From positions 62,001 through 126,000 of the forward strand of contig JAIVFI010000029.1 in assembly GCA_025558095.1 (NCBI GenBank): DNA of 64,000 bases. The letters run 5' to 3'. The DNA comes from Hyaloraphidium curvatum SAG 235-1. Taxonomy: Eukaryota > Fungi > Monoblepharomycota. The notes under the pieces were generated by a model, which did not search any database, had not been told where the DNA came from, and saw nothing but the letters and a program-made list of their open reading frames with translations. This document shows, in pieces, positions 1 to 19,737 of this stretch (its first letter is position 1; each line of letters opens with the position of its first letter). The position numbers and the translations under genes are program-made.

Positions 1-17
1 TCTGCCTAGCAGCAGTG

Positions 18-1544
18 TCAAGTAGAACTCAGCCTGCACGCGAGATCCAGCGTGACGTAAACCCCCGTCGCCCGCAGGATGGTCCACAAGCCCGCCGCAA
101 CGGTGAAGCCAGCCACCACCACCCCCCGCACGGTCCCGAAGGTCACCGGCACGCCAAAGAACCCCGACTTGAACGCACTCAGATCGACGAACGACAGCAA
201 GAGATCCCGGTGTGCCTTGACGGCCGCAAGCAGCCGGGGCCGGTCCGGGGGCACCTTTGCGGCGAGGTAGGACAGCGACTGCGCCGCAGACCGATACTGC
301 GCCGCCACGCGCTCCGGTTGGAGGTTCTTGTAGGCGTTGCCGACGGCTTGGACGCCGAGCACCCACATCGTGACGACCAAGTTGCCGAGGTAAAAGGCGG
401 GGAAGCAGGAGCCGACACCGATGTTGATGACCGCTCCGAGCACTTGGAAAAAGCAAACCGTGGCGACGATGCGGCGGGTGATCAAGCCGGCTTTGTTGAA
501 ATTGCGCCAATCCGCCAGCATGCGCCCGTGCAGTCCGACGTACGGTTCGGCTTCCAAAACTGCGAGAGACGCGTCATCCGAGGGACCGCAATCCAGAGCG
601 CGGGAAAGCCGTTGGTGAAGGCCCTGGAGACTGAGCGCAACAGCCCGATGGCGCAAGCGGAGTTCGATCACGAGAATGCCGGCATACCCCGAAGAGGGGA
701 AGAAGGAAGCGGTGAAAATGAAGGGAACCCAGATGCAGATGCATAGAGCGCACATCACAGTAGACCACGGGGTGCTCCACACGGATCGCGCAAACGTAAC
801 TGCGGGCCCGTAGAACGCGGCCACCCCAAAGGCAACGTGTGTGAGCAGCCCGTGAATGACGGTGTAAACAACCATAAAGGTTCTGGCGCGCAAGAGGGCG
901 TGGCCCAGGCAGTCCGAGCGGCTGCACGGGCACAAATCGTCCGAATCGTCGTGGAAAAGGAACGACTCCGCGTCCGCGTTTCCGTGGGCCTCGAGGTCGG
1001 CCGCCGCTCGTCGCTCGTCCGTGCACAGCTGGAGGTATCGCGCGGCCAGCGCTAGCCAATTACTGTCCACGAGGGGATTCCGACGATCGGCAGGCTTGCC
1101 GGCAGCTCCGGTGTCCTTGGTGGGGCGCAGCCGCCGCCCGTAGAGGCCGAAGCCGAAGATTGCAAGGAACCAAGCCGCTTGAAGCAAAACCAACGCAACC
1201 AGGGCTGCGACCAGGTTGCTGATCCCAAAGACGTCGACCCCGAAGACCCAAGTCAGGGCGAAAAGCGCAAAAAGCGCGATGTCCCCGGTGACACGCGCCC
1301 ACGGCGACCTGTGGATTCGCCGGGCGGCACCCTCCCAGACTATAAGCGTTCCCATCGGTTTCACGTTGTCGAGCTCCTCACAGAGGGCACTCGCAGTGAG
1401 TGGGCGAGCCGCACGACCTGCCGCGGCTGCAGCGACGGCGTCCGCGGGCCAGAGCCAGGCAGGCACGTCGGGCGGCGGCCCCAAAACTGGTGCTGGAAAC
1501 AGGGCGAGCTGGAGGGCTGGCGACAGCCACAGCTGCGCGTCCAT
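18..1544 (-). CDS. Multi-pass membrane protein, gustatory-receptor-like/DUF3537-like family (paralog 1)
   Basis: Intronless 508-aa ORF with about 7 hydrophobic segments, a Cys motif (HDDSDDLCPCSRSDC) and C-terminus FFGVPVTFGTVRGVVVAGFTVAAGLWTILR. Both features are shared with the genes at 49.4 kb and 54.9 kb. Confidence 0.7.
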   Translation of the reverse strand: MDAQLWLSPALQLALFPAPVLGPPPDVPAWLWPADAVAAAAAGRAARPLTASALCEELDNVKPMGTLIVWEGAARRIHRSPWARVTGDIALFALFALTWVFGVDVFGISNLVAALVALVLLQAAWFLAIFGFGLYGRRLRPTKDTGAAGKPADRRNPLVDSNWLALAARYLQLCTDERRAAADLEAHGNADAESFLFHDDSDDLCPCSRSDCLGHALLRARTFMVVYTVIHGLLTHVAFGVAAFYGPAVTFARSVWSTPWSTVMCALCICIWVPFIFTASFFPSSGYAGILVIELRLRHRAVALSLQGLHQRLSRALDCGPSDDASLAVLEAEPYVGLHGRMLADWRNFNKAGLITRRIVATVCFFQVLGAVINIGVGSCFPAFYLGNLVVTMWVLGVQAVGNAYKNLQPERVAAQYRSAAQSLSYLAAKVPPDRPRLLAAVKAHRDLLLSFVDLSAFKSGFFGVPVTFGTVRGVVVAGFTVAAGLWTILRATGVYVTLDLACRLSST

Positions 1545-7514: not shown

Positions 7515-8660
7515 TCACAGCTTGGCCAGCCCGCTGCTCCCCATCCCAGCACCGGGCACCGGGTCCCCCCACTGCGTGTCGAACAGCGCCTGCAGCGGCG
7601 CCTCGCGGGAGCCCCAGCCGCGGTTGAGCAGGTCGCCGTCGGTGAAGTGCTCGACCGTGAAGCCGTGGGGCGAGTTCCAGTAGTCGAACACCTTGACACA
7701 CGACATGGTCAGCGGGGACCATCTCCCGAGGGCGCAAAACGACGTACCTGCGAGCCGAGGACGTGCCTCCCCACGCCCCAGGTGTGCTCGGCCTTCCTGG
7801 CGAGCAGGTGCGCGCTGCCGGCCATCAAGTCGTCCAGGTCCACCACCTCGAACGCGGCGTGGTTGAAGTGCGGCTTCTTGCCCGGCGGCGTGTTGACGAG
7901 GAAGAACGTGTGGTGCTGCGCCGAACGGGCACCCGTCAGCACCGCCGTCGCGCACCTCGTCCGGCGAACCCACGTCCGTCGGCTCGTCCCCCCTATCGCA
8001 CCGCATGAACGCCCCCACCACCCCCTTCCCCCCCGGCCCCTGCACCTCGTCGCTCGTGATCAGCCCGAAGTGGTCCTTGTACCACCTCTCGCTCCCCCCG
8101 AACGACGCCACGTCAAGCACCACGTGCCCCAGCCTCACGACCCTCGAGCGGCCCGCGGGCACGCGCTTGGTCGCGTTCGTGCGGCGGTACCCGGCGCCGG
8201 CGGCCTCGTTCAGCGGCTCGCGGGTGGGCACGGGTGCCGCGCCCCACGGCCCCCCCGCGAGGAGCTCCACGAGGTTCCCGTCCGGATCTGCACCCCCGTG
8301 CCGGTCAGCACGCCTCCCCTCCCCGGCAACGGCAGCAGACCCACCCCTAATCCTCACAACCTCCGCCCCCGCCCACGCCCCGCCCATCCCCTCCACCTTC
8401 CCCCCGACCCTGCCCGCGAACACCTTCAGCTCCTCCCCGCTCCCGACCCGCAGCCCGACCCCCCCGAACCCCAGCGGCCCCTGCTCCAGCACCACGACGA
8501 CGGGCTCGTTGCCCAGCCCCCGGAAGTGCCCCGGGTGCCCGTTGATTTCGTCCAGCCCGAAGTCGCGGAAGAAGGCCGACTCCAGGGCCAGGTCGGGCAC
8601 GCGGAAGCGGACGAAGGCGACGTCGCGGATGCGGACGTGCGGGGCGGGGGCGGTGTACAT
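7515..8660 (-). CDS. VOC/glyoxalase-family extradiol dioxygenase-like protein, multi-exon
   Basis: RLGHVVL, HHTFFL, HAAFEV and HTWGVGRHVLGSQ|VFDYWNSPHGFTVEHFTDGD across exons. Ends ...LAKL*. Confidence 0.85.
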   Translation of the reverse strand: MYTAPAPHVRIRDVAFVRFRVPDLALESAFFRDFGLDEINGHPGHFRGLGNEPVVVVLEQGPLGFGGVGLRVGSGEELKVFAGRVGGKVEGMGGAWAGAEVVRIRGGSAAVAGEGRRADRHGGADPDGNLVELLAGGPWGAAPVPTREPLNEAAGAGYRRTNATKRVPAGRSRVVRLGHVVLDVASFGGSERWYKDHFGLITSDEVQGPGGKGVVGAFMRCDRGDEPTDVGSPDEVRDGGADGCPFGAAPHVLPRQHAAGQEAALQPRRVRGGGPGRLDGRQRAPARQEGRAHLGRGEARPRLAGTSFCALGRWSPLTMSCVKVFDYWNSPHGFTVEHFTDGDLLNRGWGSREAPLQALFDTQWGDPVPGAGMGSSGLAKL

Positions 8661-9008
8661 CGCGGCGGCGTTGGAGGCGATGTGGAGGGTGGAGGAGGGG
8701 GAGACAGGGCGGGGTTATGTGAGCGGCGGGTGGGGGCGAGGCGTGCGGGGGCGGTGCATTCTCGCGATCGGAACGGGCGGGGCAAATGCGGGAGGACCGG
8801 GTAGTCCCGGCCACAAGGTGGGGCGGAGGATGGAGAGGATGGAGCAGAGATTGCTGGAAGTGGAAAGATGGATTGGATCGGAGGTCCTATACGGCCCCGC
8901 GCGAAGGGAAAGAACCGTCTATGCCGTTGGAGGCGCTACACATCCCCGGTCCCGTCCGCCTTCCTCGCAGTCCCGCGTCCAATCGGTCCGCCCGAAGCTC
9001 GTGGCAAG

Positions 9009-10451
9009 CTGTGGGACAACCGGCATCGGGAGATCCGAGTGAGATCAGCGATCCGCTCGGTCCGGACGTCGTCCCACCTTTGCCCGTCCTGCAGCGCCGG
9101 CGCCATGTTCGTGAATTGAAAAAGGCCGGAGAGGTCGGATCTGTGAGGATACAACGGATTTACGCGGGGTTGCCATTTGTAACCCCATAGCGTCCAGCAT
9201 CCCCACCTTTCGATCACCGACCTGGGTCCGTCCGAAATCAATCCCACTGCATCTGTGAGCCAACCAAGGCGACGATATGACGCTCTTCCGGCGCATCTCG
9301 ACGTCCGCTGCCCCACCTGCAAGAAGATGTCCACGCTCAAGGGGGGAATCCGGCGCCGTCCGAGGGTCCGTGCATGCGGCCGTCCGTCGGAAAGGAATCT
9401 GTGGGAACAGTGGATAGATCGATGCTTGGATTTCTCCCCGCGTCGATCACAGCCGCGATCCCACCTGCACGGGAATGCGCGACGAAAGCGAGGCGTCGAT
9501 GTCCCCAACGTCCAGCCAGAGCCGGCCGGTCCGGATCGTCCGAAGCAATCCTGCAGGCTGTAGGGTTCGACGAGGCAGCCAGGTGAGCGTCTGTCCCGCT
9601 CCTCGCACCTGCCGTCGCCCCCACCTTATGGCGCGCTCGCGGCGACGCCGCCACCTCGTGGGCGTCCGAAGTGGTCGATCGACTCTTCGTGCTGGCGTGC
9701 ATCTGTGAGGATCGAAGAGCGCACTCGGGCCGGATGCCAAGAGATTGGCTCCAACTGTCCGCGATCCCCACCTTCCGAACAAGCCGGGGAAACCGTCCAA
9801 TGACGGATCGGCACCTGTGGGACGACCGACCGAGCTCATGGACGCTTTCCAAACGCATCCTTGCGGTCGGCTGCCCCACCTGCAGGCTCCATCCGCCGTA
9901 CGAGCGCAGCAGCTCCATCCGCCGCACGAGCACAATCAAACGCGCCGCCGAAGTATTCTCGGGGCCGACGATGCGGAGGGGAGTCTGTGGCAGCCCACGG
10001 TCCGAGGAATGGTTGGCTCTCTTGCGGGACCAATCCCCGTCCGGGGCGGTCCACCTGGCTCTGTGCACGAACGAGCCGACGTCGAAACCAATGAAAGACG
10101 CGAGAACATATTTGGAAAGCCTGTAGGGCACAACAAGCATGGAGGATGATTCTCGGATTCATCTCCTGACAGGTCGCTCTCCCACCGTGCCGCGAAGTAT
10201 CGGTTCGTCCAAAAAGCGCAGCTGGTACGCTCGTCTAGTCTTGTAGTAACGAGAACGGAATACGCGGTGAGACGAATGCGCGGCTGCCGCAGATCCGGTC
10301 GTTCCCACCGCTCGAGGACAAGCCACCCTCGGAAGCCCGATCTTCACGAGTCCCCGCGCAGGTAGTCCCTCTTGGACGCAGCCTGTGGAGATTCCCATGC
10401 AGACGTCGAAGTGAGCACCTGTGTGCGCCCTTCGATGGTCCGTCTCCCCAC
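9009..10451 (-). ncRNA. Array A: 11 hairpin-forming short GT-AG units (mirtron-like candidate)
   Basis: Minus-strand units at 10383-10451, 10240-10308, 10121-10185, 9985-10054, 9815-9879, 9703-9771, 9558-9624, 9399-9464, 9253-9316, 9141-9206 and 9009-9077. All are 64-70 nt, begin GTGG and end ACAG (one ACAAG), with complementary termini and inner stems. Confidence 0.6.
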
Positions 10452-10747
10452 CTTCTCCGCTGTCTCCTCCGCCCTCTCCCACGCCTCCTCCTTCCCCTCC
10501 AGGTCCTCCCCTCCCTGGGCCGCCGTCCACGACGCGCTCGACGGGTTCAGGGCGCTCCCGGGTCCGAGGGTGGCGTTTTGGACGGGCAGCAACTTGCAGA
10601 GGCCGGGAAGTGCGAGAAGCCTAGCGGGCGGCGTCGGCGGCGGGCGGGCCGGCGTCCGAGGGGGGCAGCCCGTGAGAGGAAGGGAAGGCAATGGAATGCC
10701 GAGGAAAGTTGATGGCTTGCAGGGAACGAGCAAGGAGGCGCGGACAT
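10344..10747 (-). pseudogene. Leader small-protein gene of array A (frameshifted copy)
   Basis: Reconstructed as MSRLLARSLQAINFPR...PLGFSHFPASASCCPSKTPPSDPG...PSSASWTAAQGGEDLEGKEEAWERAEETAEK|AASKRDYLRGDS*, which requires about three 1-nt indels. Homologous to 16974-17389. Confidence 0.55.
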
Positions 10748-10957
10748 CGCGGGAAGTGAATGACGTGGCGGACGCGCCGACTCCCTTTGCGTGCGATTCT
10801 TCGGTCCCCTCGTCAACCGGCCCCACAATTCATCGCCAGACGGTGCTAGAAGAGCTCAACTGGACGTCGAGCCCAACAGGAGGTACGACCTTCAATTGCT
10901 CTACCAATAGCACTGAACAAAGTGAAGTCAAAGGCAAATTCCCACCGCAACGATGCG

Positions 10958-11947
10958 TCACGCCCACACCTGCCGCCCGCGTTGCACAGGCGATCCATCC
11001 AAATCGCCCATCTGCTCCTCGCACCGCGACCCTGGCCTCCGCTGCGCCAGGAGCAGCGCCCCCGTCGCCTCGTCGTACGTCACCCTCGCCCCCGACGGCG
11101 ACCTGCGCCTGACGCGTTCCGGCGATCGGAAAAAAGGATGACGCAGCGCCTCGGCAGCGCTAGTCCTCCTGCCGGGGTCGGCCTCCAGCATGCGCGCGAC
11201 CAGGTCTCGCAGCGCCTCGGGCACGGGCGCGCCCGCGGGGAACGCCCAGTCGGCCGCGAGGATGCGCCTGTACACGTCCGCGAGGCACCGCGAGTCCTCG
11301 AACGGCGTTTTGCCGCACGTAAGCTCGTAGGCGATGCAGCCGGCGGCGAACACGTCCACTGTGGGCCCGTACCCGTCGCCGCGGAGAATCTCGGGGGCGA
11401 GGTAGAAGGGCGTGCCGACGAAGGTGCGCAGGAGGGGGTCGCCGGGCGCGGTGGGGCCCGAGGCAAAGTCAAAGTCGCCCAGCGCGACCGAGGAAGGGTC
11501 GTCGAGGCGGCGCAGCAAGACGTTTCCTGGCTTCACGTCGCGGTGCGCGATGCCGTGCGAGTGTAGGTGCGCCAGGCCGGACAGTACGCCGCGCAGCACC
11601 TCGCGGATGTCGCTCATGGGCAGCAACCCCCAGCGCCGCGCGACGAGACCGGCGAGGTCGCCCTCTGCCTGCTCCATCGACACGTAAAATGCGTCCGCCG
11701 TTTGGAACACCTCGAACACGCGCACCACGTGCGGGTGCGGCACCGCGGCCACCGCAACATGGCGCGCGGGGAACGACGGGTCGGCCGTCGCCCGCGGCAC
11801 GGACTTGAGCGCGACGCGGCGCGGGGGGTCGAGGCACAGCGCCGCCCGCACGCGGCCGTTGGCGCCGCTGCCTAGGTGCGCGACGACGCGGTGCGCTCGC
11901 CGACGCGCTCGGCCGTGGGCCTCCAACGCGGCGTCGGAGGAGTACAT
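10958..11947 (-). CDS. Ser/Thr protein kinase (CAMK-like)
   Basis: LGSGANGRV, VALK, HRDVKPGN, DFD (in place of DFG), GTPFYLAPE, DVFAAG. Start ATG chosen at 11947. Confidence 0.88.
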   Translation of the reverse strand: MYSSDAALEAHGRARRRAHRVVAHLGSGANGRVRAALCLDPPRRVALKSVPRATADPSFPARHVAVAAVPHPHVVRVFEVFQTADAFYVSMEQAEGDLAGLVARRWGLLPMSDIREVLRGVLSGLAHLHSHGIAHRDVKPGNVLLRRLDDPSSVALGDFDFASGPTAPGDPLLRTFVGTPFYLAPEILRGDGYGPTVDVFAAGCIAYELTCGKTPFEDSRCLADVYRRILAADWAFPAGAPVPEALRDLVARMLEADPGRRTSAAEALRHPFFRSPERVRRRSPSGARVTYDEATGALLLAQRRPGSRCEEQMGDLDGSPVQRGRQVWA

Positions 11948-12625
11948 TGTAGGCGGTGGGTGGTTCAAGGCTGGAAAGCGGGAAACGTCTCCCGCGGGCT
12001 CGGTTGGGATGTCCCCGAGAATGGCTGTGTCACTACAGGCTAAACTGCCCTGTTTCCCCGCCCCGGTTTCCTCGACCGGGAGCCCCAACGGCACAGATTC
12101 CGCCCACACTGCGCTTCCGGATATGTATGCCGGTGTGATGCCTGCAGGCTGGGTGCGCGGAGGCAGTGAACGGAAAAACGAGACTCCGAGAGTGTAGCCT
12201 AAATGCGGGCCTTGACGCAATGGTTCCCGTGCCCCGACGCAGAACAACGAATCCCGCGGACGGGCAGTGAACCGCCGCCCTGGCGTGACCAGCTTGTTCG
12301 CTTGTCGGTCGCGCGGCTCGAATTGCGGTCCGACGCTGCGGCCCGCCGGGGTCGAGGTCACGGACGCCGAAAAGGTCCGGACCCCCGCTGCGCCTCGTCG
12401 TGGCCGATCGGCAACCGTGCGCCCGGCAGCTGGCGAACGGCATCGGGAGTGGGCGGAACAGGCGCTGCAGGCGGATTCGCTCCCCCAAGCGTGCCTCCCG
12501 TGGCCCGGTCCGCCGGAGATGAGCCTCACACAAGGTACCACGTCGGCCACCATGTTTGAATCACGCACTTCCGATCCAGAGATTGCGGAATCATCGTGTG
12601 CACAAGAATGGAGATGAATGCCTGC

Positions 12626-13663
12626 TCATCCTACTCCAGGCCTCACTCGTCCCCGATGCCCGTGGAGCTTGCACGACAGCTCCCACAGCTCCTTCGCCGG
12701 CTCCTCGTCGTACGCGTACGGCTTGAACCCGCTCGGCCACGGCCCCGGGTTCTCGGGATCGAACTGCAGCGCCACCCTCTCGTCCTCGAGGTACAGCCCC
12801 CCCAGCCCCTCGAGCTCCTTTGCCGTCGCGGCCCACACGCTCGTCGCGGCGCCCTGCGCGAACGACTTGATCACCGCTTGCGCGCTCTCGGCCTTCAGGC
12901 CCTCCTTGAGCTGCTCGGGCAGGTTGTCCGCCAACGGCGTGAGCACGGTGCCCGGGCTGACCGCGAACGCGCGGATGCCCTGGCCCTTGTACCGCCGGTC
13001 GATCTCGTTGGCGAGGTACAGCGTGGCCACCTTGGACTGGCCGTACGCCTCGATCGGGGGGCGGTCCGTGGGCTTCGGGTCCGTGATGCAGGCCAGATCA
13101 AGGGGGGCGTTGTGGTGCCCGAGGCTGGAGAGGGCGACGACTCGGGAGGCGGAGCCGGGGGAGGAGGAGGCCGCGAGCAGGGGCCGCAGGAGATGGAAAA
13201 GAAGGAAATGGCCCAGGTAGTTGACCTGGAAGTGGATCTCGAGGCCATTGCTTGTGGTGGAGAACTCCTTGGCCATGATCCCGGCGTTCAAGACCGCGAC
13301 GTGGATCTTGTCGCAGGCGGCGGCGATCTCCTTGGCGGCCGCGCGGACCGAGTCGTTGTCGGCCAGGTCCATGTCGACGAACACGGCGTCCTTGGCGGCC
13401 TCGCTGAGCGCCTTGGCTCCGTCCCGTTTCGAGTGCACCCCCGCGACGACGATTTTCGCGCCCGTCGCGGCCAGCGCCTTGGTGGTCTCGGCACCGATCC
13501 CCGACGTCGCGCCGGTGACGAGCACCGTCCTGCCGGCCCACTTGTCCGCCAGGCCCTGGTCCTCCACAACCTGCAGGGCCGTGGGCCGCGCGTCGCCGGC
13601 ACCCGAGGGCGACGCGTGGGCGGCCGCGTAGGGCGCGATGTCGGGCAGCGGCGGGACGGGCAT
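12626..13663 (-). CDS. Short-chain dehydrogenase/reductase (retinol-DH/WWOX-like)
   Basis: VTGATSGIG, LNAG, VNYLGHF, YGQSK; intronless. Confidence 0.92.
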   Translation of the reverse strand: MPVPPLPDIAPYAAAHASPSGAGDARPTALQVVEDQGLADKWAGRTVLVTGATSGIGAETTKALAATGAKIVVAGVHSKRDGAKALSEAAKDAVFVDMDLADNDSVRAAAKEIAAACDKIHVAVLNAGIMAKEFSTTSNGLEIHFQVNYLGHFLLFHLLRPLLAASSSPGSASRVVALSSLGHHNAPLDLACITDPKPTDRPPIEAYGQSKVATLYLANEIDRRYKGQGIRAFAVSPGTVLTPLADNLPEQLKEGLKAESAQAVIKSFAQGAATSVWAATAKELEGLGGLYLEDERVALQFDPENPGPWPSGFKPYAYDEEPAKELWELSCKLHGHRGRVRPGVG

Positions 13664-14256
13664 TGCGTTCGACTGGAGGATGCGTTTTATCTTTCGGCGG
13701 TTGATTCGAGACGCGATGGCGCGGCTGTCTCCCGCTGGGTTGTTGGGGGGGCGGAATGCATTCCGCCAGTCCGCCCGATTCCGCCCGCCCCAGCGGTATC
13801 GATCCTGCCAAGACGCTCTCGAGGCGCGCACCGCGCCTGCTGCAAACATGATTCTTTGCTCTTAGTGTTGGATCGGGCAGCTATTGAGATGAAGACAGCG
13901 TTGAAGACCCCATGGAAATCCGCAGTCCTTACCGGATCCGATCTGGATGGGTTCGGGCAAGCCCAGCCCCCCCGGCAGTCCAAAGCGGCAAAACGGATCA
14001 TCTACTGTCTAGATGAATCGACTTCCATGGAATTCAAGCTTCTCAGACTTGCTGAGGAGTTCGGAGGCTGGAGGCGGGGAAACTTCGAGTGCGGCGGAGC
14101 GGACAGCCTAAACGAGTGCACTGTACTCCCCCTCCCGTGCCCGGCCAACGGGTGCCGCGGCTGCCTCGGCCGCACTTGCCGCACTTTTGCCCTCCCCCGC
14201 GCCGTCGGCGGGTGCCCACACTAGCGCCCCCCACGCCCGCCGGAACACCTCCCGCA

Positions 14257-15888
14257 ATGGCATTCTCGGTGTCGGCCACCGAGCTCCTCCTGCTCGTGAT
14301 TGCCATCGTGGTCACCCGGCGCTTCGTCGACCACGCCTACAAGGTGCTCTACTCGCCCGTCGCCAAGATCCCCGGCCCGCAGCTCCCGCGCTGGGCGCCC
14401 TTCCTGTTCTTCCTGCCCAACGCGCTGCGCGGCAAGGCCTTCGACGCCTCGTACCGCCTGCACGAGAAATACGGGCCCGTGGTCGCCGCCGCGATAGACC
14501 GCGTCTCGGTGGCCGACCCGGCGCTGGCCCACATGGTGCTCAAGACGCTGGACCTGCCCAAGTCCAAGGTGTACAACCTGCTCCGGCGGCGGGACCAGCC
14601 CGACAACATCTTTTCGACGCTCGACAAAGCTTTCCACAAGCGCGAGCGGCGGCTCATCGGGCCGGCCTTCGCCAACCAGATCGTCAACTCCCTGGAGCCG
14701 CTCATGCTCGAGGTTGTCTCGCACCTCTTTTCCAAGATCGACCAGACCATGGCCGCCGAGGGCCGCTTCGACTTTGGCCGCGGGATCCAGAACCTCGCGC
14801 AGGACGTGATCGGCGAGACCGCCTTCGGGCAGTCCTTCAACATGGTCGAGCGCGGCACGCACCCGCTCCACGAGAGCCGCCGCGTGCTGTTCCTCTTCAC
14901 CGCCGTCCGCCGGATCCTCTACATCCTCGTGGGCTGGATCCCCTACCTCCACCTGGACGAGCGGATCATGGACATGTTCCCGCAGCTGCGGCGCGCGGCC
15001 AAGGTCAACGAGGACTTTGTCTCGGGCGTGATCCGCGACCGCAAGGCCCTCCTGGAGGAGCACGCCCGCGGCGGCTCGAAGGCCGAGTTCGGCAGGCACG
15101 ACATCCTCAACGTCCTCCTGACCCACTCGGACCCCGACACGGGGGAACGGCTCACGGACGCGCAGGTGGCCACCAACGTCGGCATCATCCTCATCGCCGG
15201 GGCCGAGACCACCGCCAACAGCCTGACCTGGGCGGTCTACTTCCTCCTGAAGAACCCGCGCGCCCTCGGCGCGCTCCGCGCCGAGCTGGACGCCGCCTTC
15301 CCCGACGCCTCCACCCGCGGCCCGCTGGGGTTCGACCCCCTCCCGCACGAGACGCTGAGGAAGCTGCCCTACCTCGACGCCAGCATCAAGGAGGCCCTCC
15401 GGATCATGCCCGTAGCGGGCGTCGGCCTCCCCCGCGAGGCGGACCGCGACCTCGACCTGGGGGGGTACCTCATTCCAAAGGGGACGATGATCGGGGTGGC
15501 GGTGTTTGCGCTGCACCGCTCGCCGAAGCTGTGGCAGCGTGCGGGGGAGTTTTGGCCCGAGAGGTTCCTCGGCGAGGAGGAGGAGGAGAAGGGCGACGGG
15601 CCCAAGAGGTACAACAAGGAGGCGTTCGTGCCGTTTTCGCTGGGGACGAGGAATTGTGTGGGGATGAACTTCGCGTGGATGGAGGTGCGTCGGTCCGCCG
15701 AGGCACGGGGTGGTCAACGTTCCTTATCCCCGTCCCCGCAGATGAAGGTCGTGCTGGCGCACCTGGTGCGGTACTACGACCTCGGTTTGGTGCCGGGTCA
15801 GCAGGACAAGGAGGCGGAGGCGGTGTCGTACATCACGCTGCAGCCGCGGAGCGGGAGCCTGCTGATCACGGCCGAGCGGAGGGCTTGA
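14257..15888 (+). CDS. Cytochrome P450
   Basis: N-terminal TM anchor, IPGP, AGAETT, EALR, PERF and heme motif FSLGTRNCVG. In-frame 57-nt intron at 15685-15741. Confidence 0.95.
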   Translation: MAFSVSATELLLLVIAIVVTRRFVDHAYKVLYSPVAKIPGPQLPRWAPFLFFLPNALRGKAFDASYRLHEKYGPVVAAAIDRVSVADPALAHMVLKTLDLPKSKVYNLLRRRDQPDNIFSTLDKAFHKRERRLIGPAFANQIVNSLEPLMLEVVSHLFSKIDQTMAAEGRFDFGRGIQNLAQDVIGETAFGQSFNMVERGTHPLHESRRVLFLFTAVRRILYILVGWIPYLHLDERIMDMFPQLRRAAKVNEDFVSGVIRDRKALLEEHARGGSKAEFGRHDILNVLLTHSDPDTGERLTDAQVATNVGIILIAGAETTANSLTWAVYFLLKNPRALGALRAELDAAFPDASTRGPLGFDPLPHETLRKLPYLDASIKEALRIMPVAGVGLPREADRDLDLGGYLIPKGTMIGVAVFALHRSPKLWQRAGEFWPERFLGEEEEEKGDGPKRYNKEAFVPFSLGTRNCVGMNFAWMEVRRSAEARGGQRSLSPSPQMKVVLAHLVRYYDLGLVPGQQDKEAEAVSYITLQPRSGSLLITAERRA

Positions 15889-16027
15889 GCTTAGCGTGCG
15901 GGGCTGCAGGCCGTCGCGACGAGTTCGGCGGTGGAAGGAACGTACTTGCCGTTTGGAAGTGGATTGAGCTATTGAGGTGTTGGCCTCCGCAGGTCGGAAT
16001 TGATTCTAGTTGATGAAAGACAGAGAG

Positions 16028-16881
16028 TCACATCTTTGGCGCCTTCTCGACGAACGACACCTCCACCGCCCCCAACCTCCCCACCTCTGCCCTCGCCCCG
16101 AACCCGCCCTTTACGTCCGGCGGCGCGAACCACGGCACGATCGCCGACCCGGTCGACAGCACGTCCCCCTTCCTCAGCTCGATCCCGAACCCCGCGAGCG
16201 TCCTCGCCAGCGCGGCGACGTTGTTGAGCGGGTTCCCGGCTATGCGGGAGGAGTTGCCCTCGGCGACCGTTTTGCCGTCCACGGCTAGGGAGGCGGGGAG
16301 GTCCGCGATGTGCGGCAGGATGTCGGCGGCGGGGACCTCCGGGCCGATGACGAGCGAGTGGAACAGCACGCCGTCCGCGACCAAAAGAGGGAGGTGCAAA
16401 CGGGTGTAGCGGTTGTCGATGACCTCGAAGGCGGCGGCGACGGTGCCGATGTATTTGGCCGAGTCGGCGGCGGTGAGCGTCCGGGCAGCGGAGAGGGGGA
16501 TGGTCTCGCCCAGGCGGACGAGCACTTCGACCTGCACGTGCCCAGAGGACGGGAAATCAGCAGAAGCGGATGTGATTCGGGGAAACGCACCTCCAGGCCC
16601 AGCTTGTTGAACGAGCCCCTGTCTAGCTGGCCGCCGCTCCCGTGGACCTGCTTCGTGTGAACCGCGCCCCCGTGCGCGCTGCCATCTCCCACGGGCGGCG
16701 GCAAGACCGCGATTTTCCAGCCCACGCGGGGGCCCAGTTGCGGTTCGCGCGCCTTTGAGACCTCGAGCGCCGCGGGGTACGCGTCGGCCGCGTTCGTCGG
16801 GACGAGCTCGGCGGGCGGGGCGACGAGCACCGGCAGGCCGGCGGCGTGCGCCGAGAGGATGTACTCCGCGAGAGGGAGCAT
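16028..16881 (-). CDS. FAH-superfamily hydratase/decarboxylase, 2-keto-4-pentenoate hydratase (MhpD)-like
   Basis: GWKIA, LE|VEVLVRLG, AFEVIDNRY, LVADG, GNP, GDVLSTGS. Intron at 16532-16590 keeps the frame. Confidence 0.85.
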
Positions 16882-16973
16882 CGTTGGAATCCGGGTTGTC
16901 GGGGCCGAGGGGAGGCAGACGCGGGAGGCAATAAGGGACTCGGCCTTCCGCGCCACGTCATTCGTTGCCTTCG

Positions 16974-17389
16974 ATGTCGCGCCTCCTTGCCCGCTCCCTC
17001 CCCGCCATCAAGCTCCCTCGCCTCTCCCTTGCCTCCTCTTTCTCCTCCCGCCCTCCTGCCGCGGACGCTGAGGCCCCGCCCGCCGACGACACCGTCCCGA
17101 AGCACCCCCTCGGCTTTTCGCACTTCCCCGCCTCGGCGCGGTGCTGCCCGCCCAAATCCCCTTCGTCGGACCCCGGCACCGCGGCATTTCCGTCGAGCCC
17201 GTCGTGGACTGCGCCCAAGGGAGGAGAACGGGTGGAGGGGAAGGAGGAGGCGTGGTAGAGGGCGGAGGAGGGCAAGGAGAAGGTGGGACGCGGAGCGGAG
17301 CGATGGACGGAGCGGAAAGATGTTCATTGCCTTGCCACTGGGTCGCACAGGCTGCGGGGAGGAGGGACTACCTGCGCGGGGACTCGTGA
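16974..17389 (+). CDS. Leader small-protein gene of array B (about 115 aa, one in-frame TAG)
   Basis: MSRLLARSLPAIKLPR...HPLGFSHFPASARCCPPKSPSSDPG...EGKEEAW*RAEEGKEK|AAGRRDYLRGDS* if 17283-17350 is spliced. Many synonymous third-position differences versus copy A. Confidence 0.55.
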
Positions 17390-18600
17390 AGATCGGTCGT
17401 CGGGGTCCGCGCAAAACTTGCGCTTCGCAGGTGGGAATTCAGATCCGCGGCAGCTGCTCCGGGTTGGACTGCCCCTGATGTGCCTCCTCACAGGTTGTCC
17501 GGGCCGGACCAGCTCTGCGGCGGCCGTGGGGACGGATACCTTGATCGGATCTTCGAGGTGGGTGAGCGACGCGTTGGAGGATGGCTTACTGAGCTGTTCC
17601 TGATGTTTGCTGCGTCCTACAGTCTTTTTGATTAGCGCCCTGCTGGCGGCCGGCTTTCCCGCCGACGAGTCTGGGCGCAGAGCCAGGTGACTGGGATCCC
17701 GGCCGGCGGCGAGAGTGGTCAAAGCGCGAGAGCCAACAACAACGCACTTCCGTCGTCCCACAGCTTCCCTCCGCAACTCTCTCCCGAAGGAACCTTCAGC
17801 AGGGCGCGTCATATTCCACGCACGTTGAAACCGAACTTGCAGGTGGGGCAACGGACGGCAAGGACGAGCTTATTTGGAAACGTCGATTGGCCAATGCCCG
17901 CTTCCCCACAGGTGCCGATCCGCAAGCCGGATCGAGATCGGACGGATTCCTGCTAGCGGATGCTTCGTGCCGTTCGGACCGTGGGGATTGCAGGGTGCCG
18001 CGATGTGATCTTCTTCACATCAACGTGCGATCATGCGGTCCCCACAGATTCGCTCCAGCCCCAGCGAGTCCTCGGGCGTATCCATCGGCCGTGCGGCACC
18101 GGCAGCGATGCATCGTTCTTGTTCAGGTGGAACCGCGGCGCCAAGCGATGCGGCTGCAAAGCTGATCATTGCTTCGTCGTGAGCTCCACAGATGCCTCTC
18201 GGGAGGGACGAGCCGCGCCTTGTGGACAGCGGCGCGTTCGAATCACGCACGGACGTCCTGAAGGTGAGGAAGCGGACGTCGAGATGCGCTCCTACATTTC
18301 ATTGCGCCCACGGTCTCACAGGTGTCGCGCGCGAAGGTCATCGCGGGATGGGCTTTCTTCGCCGGTGCTCGAGTACTTTGGAAGGTGGGGATCACGAGTG
18401 CTGCGGGGTTGCTTTCGAGCATCTCCAGAACGAATGCGAGGTAGACTGGTTTTCCCCACAGATCCCAGCTTTCTCGAACCTATGGACACGGGCGTTCGCG
18501 GCTTCATGTAGACGGGCGGAGCGTACGCACGAAGGTGGGACGGCGACCGGCCCCGAGCGGATCCCGGATCTCACTCGTTGTGTATTCGCGTCTCCCACAG
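17283..18600 (+). ncRNA. Array B: 10 hairpin-forming short GT-AG units (mirtron-like candidate)
   Basis: Units at 17283-17350, 17431-17493, 17558-17622, 17687-17763, 17843-17911, 17981-18047, 18127-18191, 18264-18321, 18385-18461 and 18535-18600. Nine of ten are preceded by AG, all end ACAG, termini are complementary, and spacers are 63-80 nt. Confidence 0.6.
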
Positions 18601-18885
18601 CTTGCGCGAGCTTCTGGCGGCAGACGCGGACGCGGGACCGAAGATGGCTGGGCGGGGACGGGATTGGGACGTGTGATGCCTCCGAAGCATAGACGATCCT
18701 CAGTCGGGCCCGCACATGAGCAACTGCCATTTCCAAATCAATTCTAGCATATCTCCATCCGACTCTGACATGCTTTTCACTGTCTTCCAATCCAACTCGA
18801 AGTCGGACGGGAGGCTGTACATGAGACCGCAGTAGTTCACAACACTATAATGCTGATCCAACCCTGGCCCTCCTCCTGCGGCCCT

Positions 18886-19737
18886 TCACAGCCTCCCGCG
18901 AAGCCGTCCCCCGACGATCGAGTCCCTGAACGCCGCCAAGGCGTCGGCCAGGTCCCCGGGATCCCCATCCGTCTGCACCATGTGCCCCTTGCCCTTCAGC
19001 CACACCGTCTCCACCCCGTACGCCGCCGCGGTGCGCTCGACGGCAGGGGCCGACACCATGTTGTCGCAATCACCGCCGACCACGAGCACGGGGCAGGGCA
19101 CCTTGGAGGGTTCTGGCATCACCGTGTTCATCTGCTTGGCGGCGAACGAAGATTCCTCCCCCACGGCGGCCTGATGCTCCCTGATGGTCTCCTCTGGCGT
19201 GTCGGGGCTGAAGAGCAGCCAGCGGCACGCCCTGGGGTCCTCGTACAGCACGCTGAAGCGGTTGTACCACATGGCCTTGAGGAATGCCCAGGGCTGGTTC
19301 CAGATCATCCGCGGGCCCTCGGAGCGCATGCCGCCGACCGGGGACGACGCCAGGAGGACGATTCCGGGGAGGGCGAATCGGCCCGAGGCCGCGAGGAGCT
19401 GGGTGATGAGGCCGCCCATGCTGTGGCCCACGAGGATCGGCAGCGGGCCGGCTGCAGCGATCGCATCGAGGGCGCGTCCGACGTCGTCGCAGAAGTCGAA
19501 TATGGAGGCCTCCTGCAGCTCCGCGTGGCCTCCGCTCCCGCCGTGGCCGCGCAAAGAGACCGCTGCGGTGCCGATGCCCCTTTCGGCGAGCGCGCGCATC
19601 AGTTGGAGGTACGTGGCCGCGCGGCAGGAAGAGCCGTGGACGAGCAGGAACGCGGGCGGCGCGGGGCCCATCGAGAGCAGCTCTAGGGGAGGCGCGCCGC
19701 CGGACGCGTGGAGCATCGCCGTGCGGGCGTCGCTCAT
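18886..19737 (-). CDS. Alpha/beta hydrolase
   Basis: LLVHG, SLRGHG, nucleophile elbow GHSMGG, GGDCDNMV, GHM; intronless. Confidence 0.88.
   Translation of the reverse strand: MSDARTAMLHASGGAPPLELLSMGPAPPAFLLVHGSSCRAATYLQLMRALAERGIGTAAVSLRGHGGSGGHAELQEASIFDFCDDVGRALDAIAAAGPLPILVGHSMGGLITQLLAASGRFALPGIVLLASSPVGGMRSEGPRMIWNQPWAFLKAMWYNRFSVLYEDPRACRWLLFSPDTPEETIREHQAAVGEESSFAAKQMNTVMPEPSKVPCPVLVVGGDCDNMVSAPAVERTAAAYGVETVWLKGKGHMVQTDGDPGDLADALAAFRDSIVGGRLRGRL

Follow-up and report, generated by a model that had tools for sequence, protein, structure and literature searches.

The array of hairpin-forming units at positions 9009-10451, on the minus strand of the 64-kb window from the fungus Hyaloraphidium curvatum SAG 235-1 that was analysed here, was found to be a run of spliceosomal introns, and the spacers between the units were found to be exons that are ligated in RNA. 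The array (hereafter array A; all coordinates are positions in the window unless another location is named) belongs to a multi-exon minus-strand transcript, which extends from ~10770 to ~8800 and has no coding potential in common with its paralogue, array B (17283-18600, plus strand). The original prediction, made from the DNA letters, had described the units as free-standing hairpin repeats set between spacers, a view that was not borne out by the GT-AG splicing seen in RNA contigs. It was proposed that the introns, and not the exons, may be the product of the transcript, so that array A would be a mirtron- or agotron-like array of small-RNA precursors. We assign this reading a probability of about 0.4.

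On the minus strand, each unit of array A takes the form of a GT-AG intron, GTGGG...CYCACAG, preceded by (A/C)AG. The RNA evidence consisted of the contigs of one public run holding the locus, which carry no information on strand or abundance. Eight consecutive joints were present in a single 519-nucleotide (nt) contig, the joint 8853>8916 among them. In total, eight of the 11 units (units 4-11) were removed in RNA contigs, as was an ordinary twelfth intron. Since the exon joints were exact, the spacers were recognized as exons and the hairpins as sequences that are spliced out. The first unit of array B (17283-17350) was likewise spliced exactly in a cross-mapping RNA contig with a depth of ~90.

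Seven units were removed to the nucleotide by minus-strand GT..AG joints. These were unit 4 (9985-10054, 70 nt, GTGGAC...GCCACAG), for which the joint 9984>10055 read CT..AC on the plus strand and the interior-shuffle z (unit ends fixed, interior shuffled) was -3.6; unit 5 (9815-9879), the joint of which skips 65 nt and which folds at -38.9 kcal/mol with a z of -4.1; unit 7 (9558-9624; joint 9557>9625; z -2.0); unit 8 (9399-9464; joint 9398>9465; z -2.5); unit 9 (9253-9316; joint 9252>9317); unit 10 (9141-9206; joint 9140>9207; z -3.7); and unit 11 (9009-9077; joint 9008>9078). Unit 6 (9703-9771; z -2.9) was removed by the joint 9691>9772, which skips 80 nt (9692-9771). The twelfth intron (8854-8915, minus strand), identified by the joint 8853>8916 and lying beyond the range of the original prediction, was of the ordinary type, GTTCTT...TTCCAG, and showed no terminal pairing. 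Two instances of alternative splicing were also observed in the array: the acceptor of unit 6 at 9692 lies 11 nt past the end of the hairpin, and a low-depth joint, 9825>9880, skips just 54 nt of unit 5 and has non-canonical ends.

The 5' part of the transcript begins with a leader, the first exon (10452-10770, minus strand), which is non-coding and is the part best conserved between A and B; an RNA contig reaches 10764. Unit 1 (10383-10451) is a candidate hairpin GT-AG intron, in which AAG precedes GTGGGG...CTCCACAG; it folds at -28.4 kcal/mol with a z of -1.8, and its homologue is the spliced unit 1 of array B. Unit 2 (10243-10308) has deviant borders, GCG before GTGGGA...CTACAAG, and unit 3 (10121-10185; z -1.5) has ACG before GTGGGA...CCCTACAG. 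Both were unspliced in the RNA contig 10055-10366, of depth 20, and look retained. The leader is also crossed from the other side: a 358-nt contig covering 10342-10436 and 10502-10764 at a depth of ~5 points to a spliced plus-strand antisense RNA, with a GT..AG intron at 10438-10502 that has a long pyrimidine tract before its AG. The site matching this antisense intron in array B has AC instead of AG.

The layout of the array was largely as first described. Its 11 units of 64-70 nt are separated by spacers of 74, 57, 66, 105, 43, 78, 93, 82, 46 and 63 nt, that is, by 43-105 nt. Read on the plus strand, the units start with CTGTRRG and finish with YCCACC, and the pattern CTGTRGG-N40-70-CCCACC had nine matches in the window, all of them inside arrays A and B; the expectation from shuffles was 0.22. 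Ten units were placed in array B, the transcription of which points away from A. The units follow the same order in both arrays, which are therefore inverted and collinear copies, as had been claimed; the alignment showed that the homology is longer than supposed, covering ~8860-10770 and ~16960-18760 (~1.9 kb) and taking in the 320-nt leader and the tail. The predicted gain or loss of one unit was confirmed as a difference in count (11 against 10), but the unit 9399-9464 could not be fixed as the unpaired one: one alignment pairs it with B 18127-18190 and another leaves it without a partner. By sequence alignment the extra unit of A is ambiguous, and may be either 9399-9464 or 9558-9624.

Absence of a reading-frame constraint had been predicted from spacer differences between A and B that are not multiples of three. 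Such differences, now read as differences in exon length, were recovered after placement of the 10 B units. When the units were removed in silico, no open reading frame (ORF) common to spliced A and spliced B was found, and the array was therefore regarded as a multi-exon non-coding transcript. Coding exons were rejected on this ground, the 208-aa ORF of A having no counterpart in B. A leader protein was rejected as well, since no reading frame is common to the A and B leaders on either strand. Rfam matched no family at the gathering score in the window, nor any at E up to 1 over 8600-18900, and the Rfam and transfer RNA scans together gave a single hit, at chance level (p27_CRE, E 0.61).

These results bear on the idea that the locus is a host gene of small nucleolar RNAs (snoRNAs) of the GAS5 or UHG kind, or that its introns are derived from introners or miniature inverted-repeat transposable elements (MITEs). 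A spliced non-coding host whose introns each contain a structured element and whose exons are poorly conserved would fit the former, and unit ends that can be read as inverted repeats flanked by AG...AG would fit the latter. We consider both very improbable. No snoRNA was matched in Rfam even at the relaxed threshold, consistent boxes were lacking, and 64-70 nt leaves too little room for splice signals in addition to a box C/D or H/ACA RNA. Introner- or MITE-like units should be dispersed, and these are not: the interior of array A matches its paralogue only, and no interior similarity was found between units of non-paralogous arrays.

The introns of array A were compared, together with those of five further arrays described below (45 units altogether), with ordinary introns of the same genome, the controls being few (21-26) and picked by pattern rather than by annotation. 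The array introns measure 58-77 nt, with a median of 67 nt. A terminal helix, counted inwards from the pair of nt 1 with nt n-2, averaged 6.3 base pairs (bp) in array introns versus 2.5 bp in ordinary ones; 40 of 45 array introns, but 3 of 21 ordinary ones, had a helix of 5 bp or more. In 19 of the 21 units of A and B, pairing of nt 1 with nt n-2 leaves the final AG as a 2-nt overhang. The 3' pentamer CACAG was present in 40 of 45 array introns and in none of the 21 ordinary introns. The other conserved end, GTGGG, proved not to be special to the hairpins: it is simply the commonest splice donor of the genome, where ordinary introns of ~60 nt have the form GTGGGT...GCTGAC...YGCAG. The pattern AGGTGGG-N48-66-CCCACAG had 124 matches in the genome versus 3 in the control, mostly dispersed ordinary introns with a CTGAC branch site. 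This usual branch site is mostly absent from the array introns; the branch motif CTRAY occurred in only 10 of 45 units versus 58% of controls with the same ends, and even the loose motif YTNAY in just 23.

It was concluded that the arrays define a separate class of introns, with an end-to-end helix, no canonical branch motif and accurate splicing. The terminal helix looks selected, because the non-standard 3' end has been kept while the interiors diverged to background and because ordinary introns do not need it. One dispersed intron with the same ends, at G000:C1:1317594-1317664 (plus strand), contains a near-perfect inner hairpin, TGTCAGACA...TGTCTGACA, with a z of -4.0, and is possibly a stand-alone hairpin intron outside the arrays. 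A different recurrence was noted at five or more places (C1:394919, C7:688987, C28:407258, C34:393683 and C43:232482), where a near-identical stretch beginning CACAGCAATCATGATCTGCCCTTGCACATCAAGCGCC carries a GTGGG...CCACAG intron; an intron-containing transposable element is the probable explanation.

Introns poor in branch sites could also act by being spliced badly. In Cryptococcus, transposon transcripts reportedly enter the SCANR pathway, in which stalling of the spliceosome feeds the production of small interfering RNAs (siRNAs). By analogy, weak introns would pass the array transcript to an RNA-dependent RNA polymerase and Dicer, and siRNAs would arise from the whole transcript rather than from the arms of the hairpins. 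The weak branch sites agree with this, as do the presence of RNA interference (RNAi) genes in the genome, the antisense spliced transcript over the leader of A, and the abundance of unspliced RNA contigs (9958-10084 and 10055-10366, at depths of 13-20) beside the spliced forms. Such a trigger would leave both the terminal helix and the conservation of the 5' arms unexplained, and no similarity to transposons was found, the interior of A matching only B in the genome. We regard it as improbable.

The folding of the units was analysed next to their splicing. All 11 units of array A form unbranched hairpins, with 15-20 of nt 6-27 paired. Over the 45 units the interior-shuffle z averaged -1.57 and was below 0 in 84% (Wilcoxon p 4e-9); by array, the means were -2.43 (A), -1.59 (B), -1.49 (C), -1.51 (D), -0.56 (E) and -0.18 (F). 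The mean for ordinary introns with the same ends was -0.91 (p 0.03). In 36 of the 45 units the sense strand was more stable than the antisense strand (p 2e-5), a sign of G-U pairing in the RNA. Structure beyond the unit ends is thus real but modest.

The comparison of the two copies gave a more restricted picture than the one predicted, in which hairpins are conserved and spacers are free. Clear similarity between A and B was seen in three of the 10 syntenic unit pairs (A5/B5, A9/B8 and A11/B10), the same three that had been offered as examples, and in the 5' arm only. In unit 5 the 5' arm is conserved with B 17843-17911 at an identity of 0.74. Unit 9 is conserved over its first 26 nt, with B 18264-18321 as its counterpart and an identity of 0.87 for the 5' arm versus 0.43 for the 3' arm, and in unit 11 conservation with B 18535-18600 covers the first ~42 nt. 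The 3' arms were 0.41 identical versus a background of 0.40. Of the 990 5'-arm pairs that can be formed among all 45 units, 12 scored above the 99.9% level of a null made by shuffling, and each of these pairs lies within paralogous arrays. The asymmetry between the 5' and 3' arms was repeated in all three array pairs, the alignment of C with D being so heavily rearranged that it yielded no unit-by-unit statistics. The spacers, for their part, are not free. The leader is ~73% identical between A and B over ~450 nt and has no other copy in the genome; spacer (exon) starts are 0.56 identical versus a background of 0.39; and exon 2 contains a conserved block (10337-10371, minus strand), the 29-nt core of which (10337-10365) is identical in A and B and occurred at these two genomic places only in an exact search, extending by eye to ~35 nt, at ~10371. 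Judged from these alignments, the conserved features of the units are the terminal helix, shared by all, and a linear 5' arm in some of them.

Patchy similarity of this kind is also what a functionless, decaying and still transcribed duplication would leave, through uneven decay or small gene-conversion tracts. Tandem duplication would have multiplied the exon-intron modules, segmental duplication would have done so for whole arrays, and the shared ends would be inherited. The neighbours C5, C6 and C7 (and D6 and D7) are clearly tandem duplicates, the arrays occur only in paralogous pairs, a retroelement adjoins array C, most unit interiors of A and B are at background identity, and in A the borders of units 2 and 3 are degraded and both units look retained. 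Decay is nevertheless rather unlikely in our view. It does not account for a 3' end, CYCACAG, that is not the usual acceptor context of the genome and has been kept in 40 of 45 units with saturated interiors, nor for the arm asymmetry in every array pair, the better folding of the sense strand, or RNAs that are expressed and accurately spliced, the B contig at its high depth included.

A search of the 32-Mb genome for more copies showed that the interior of array A matches B only. A two-feature pattern gave 45 matches versus 4 in the control, and multi-hit non-coding clusters were present only at six arrays, which form three paralogous pairs. These are arrays A and B of this window, which are inverted relative to each other and whose transcription leads away from the four genes of a 6-kb block; arrays C and D (C29:468-469 kb and 489-490 kb), a pair 342 kb away; and arrays E and F (C7:134.7-135.2 kb and 139.2-139.5 kb). 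The loose pattern CCACAG-N-GGTGGG was uninformative (397 matches versus 452 in the control). Metagenomes searched with a conserved 24-nt word from an exon yielded no relative, and no neighbouring gene family common to the six arrays was found.

The six arrays were found to be rich in one short motif. In a scan of 8854-10452 (minus strand) and 17283-18700 (plus strand) of the window and of the loci L031, L032 and L033, GGACGG (also CGGACG and ACGGAC) occurred 40 times on the sense strand versus 4.3 expected, a ninefold excess, and 3 times on the antisense strand. The copies gather between 50 nt upstream and 20 nt downstream of the 5' splice sites; of the 18 that fall inside introns, 17 lay in the first 20 nt. 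The motif could serve to enhance splicing or to bind a protein.

This clustering would fit a spliced non-coding RNA that makes no small RNA and acts, if at all, through the mature RNA or through the act of transcription and splicing, for example by regulating a neighbouring gene or by binding a protein via GGACGG. The terminal helix would then be a splicing aid for introns poor in branch sites, whose scarcity of CTRAY and YTNAY is in keeping with such a need, and the conserved 5' arms would work as linear elements, either as enhancers or by binding a protein. The best-conserved 5' arms do differ from the best hairpins, conserved blocks are found in exons too, and an ORF on the same strand follows closely downstream of three of the six arrays. 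On the other hand, a helix that buries both donor and acceptor is expected, from general knowledge of splicing, to hinder rather than help the binding of U1 and U2AF. The nt 1/nt n-2 register with its AG overhang, present in ~90% of units, has no obvious splicing rationale, and GGACG is fairly common at ordinary 5' splice sites as well (0.39 per site versus ~1.0 in the arrays). We hold this explanation, the main rival, to be quite possible, without considering it probable.

In the proposed small-RNA reading, the excised and debranched intron would form one stem-loop with a 2-nt AG overhang at its 3' end. Each hairpin would then enter the RNAi machinery, either by a Dicer cut, as for a conventional mirtron, or by binding whole to Argonaute, in an agotron-like manner, and the slowly evolving 5' arm would act as a guide. 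Splicing, lack of coding potential, the terminal helix, the conservation of 5' arms and the presence of Dicer and Argonaute genes were established here, whereas any product in the form of small RNAs, and any target of them, is inferred. The array was compared with the conventional definition of mirtrons (PMC3431481). The hairpin ends are set by splicing in units 4-11 of A and unit 1 of B. The hairpins are straight, with paired ends and a 2-nt 3' overhang, and the stability of their interiors is uneven. At the gene level, the organism has a Dicer-like gene (C6:221-222 kb) with tandem RNase III domains and a Dicer_dimer domain, and Piwi domains at three genomic loci. Although it is not expected to aid splicing, the helix keeps an exact register with the AG overhang, the geometry of a debranched conventional mirtron. 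As a candidate guide, the conserved arm of unit 9 had 12 other matches with at most 3 mismatches versus 3 in the control; five of the 12 were one repeated sequence, and the best two had no gene-strand assignment.

Several observations weigh against this proposal. Assembled contigs cannot show RNAs of 20-30 nt, and units 1-3 of A are without a sense-strand joint among those listed, with units 2 and 3 looking retained. The claim that pairing persists despite divergence stood for array A, where every unit is a hairpin (mean z -2.4), but five of the 10 B units, like most units of E and F, fold no better than shuffled sequences, and the energy per nucleotide of array units does not differ from that of ordinary introns with the same ends. 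Not a single 3'-arm pair among all 45 units exceeded the 99.9% null. Weak hairpins are among the carriers of the best-conserved 5' arms (A9/B8, A11/B10 and E1/F2), so the constraint on the 5' arm seems independent of pairing, and GGACGG around the 5' splice sites offers a cause for it other than RNAi. Compensatory pairs were scarce, just two in a five-member subfamily, and a crude count gave nine double changes against 45 broken positions. The predicted constraint on the hairpins was upheld in features of the RNA, namely the terminal helix throughout and the preference for sense folding, while whole-hairpin conservation and compensatory change were weak.

The neighbourhood of the arrays was also described. 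The 6-kb block between A and B (10958-16957), from which both arrays are transcribed outward, contains a protein kinase, a short-chain dehydrogenase, a cytochrome P450 and a gene of the FAA-hydrolase family; the last (16028-16957, minus strand) stands back-to-back with the start of array B. The A/B homology stops at a common GAATGACGTGGCG (window 10757-10769 and ~16960-16975), which contains a TGACGT CRE-like core and may be a promoter element, because it is close to the end of an RNA contig. Two features were noted next to array C (L031 4362-5000, plus strand, and 1-1479, minus strand): a fragment of a retroelement, with reverse transcriptase and RNase H, and an ORF with a Zn2Cys6 domain that begins directly after the array on the same strand. 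The gene content according to Pfam is fungal (a chitin synthase with CHS4 and Cyt-b5 domains, cytochrome P450, short-chain dehydrogenase, protein kinase and Zn2Cys6). Together with the GT-AG splicing of the units, this led to the rejection of CRISPR-like, REP/BIME and integron attC arrays.

Known mirtrons stand alone as introns in the coding genes of animals and of a few plants; agotrons are whole short GC-rich introns of mammals, single in their coding genes, that are bound by Argonaute without Dicer. The array introns resemble the mirtrons of Drosophila, C. elegans and mammals in being short, with ends set by splicing, a straight hairpin and a 2-nt AG overhang. Their size is that of fly mirtrons, and they occur in an organism with Dicer and Argonaute genes. 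They differ from the known mirtrons, which are single and scattered in protein-coding genes, in standing 10-12 in a row in non-coding hosts of a fungus; moreover, the arrays are known from splicing and folding, only the 5' arm is conserved, and several hairpins are weak. The array introns are short, GC-rich and structured like agotrons, and a guide at the 5' end would fit conservation that is confined to the 5' arm and independent of the hairpin. Here the likeness is one of sequence and fold, and known agotrons are mammalian and solitary.

An even more tentative proposal concerns all six loci, which would be natural polycistronic arrays of splicing-released precursors, mirtron- or agotron-like, with 10-12 per non-coding host in an early-branching fungus, a dedicated class of introns and guides that all begin with the splice-donor sequence GUGGG. 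If true, this would be the first demonstration in fungi of a pathway of the mirtron type, and the first mirtron cluster of natural origin; splicing could then take the place of Drosha in processing a small-RNA cluster, and the route would be pushed deep into the fungal tree. Even without a small RNA, the arrays provide a natural test case for the recognition of short introns. On splicing-dependent small RNAs in fungi, a re-analysis of hairpin small-RNA loci concluded that those contained entirely in introns are very rare, that they have not been established as mirtrons and that more evidence is needed (PMC9757828). In the part of the literature mentioning Hyaloraphidium that was covered, no title or abstract dealt with its small RNAs.

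Among known systems, the snoRNA hosts GAS5 and UHG are similar in carrying one element per intron and in having poorly conserved exons that are discarded, but their elements are C/D or H/ACA RNAs, of which Rfam found none in the window. For clustered, tandem or polycistronic mirtrons, a literature search yielded only an engineered design, in which mirtrons are likewise placed in series on one transcript, as an artificial construct (PMC8368061). MicroRNA clusters such as mir-17~92 have many structured elements in series on one non-coding primary transcript, as the arrays do; there the elements are cut out by Drosha, whereas the units of the arrays are released by splicing.

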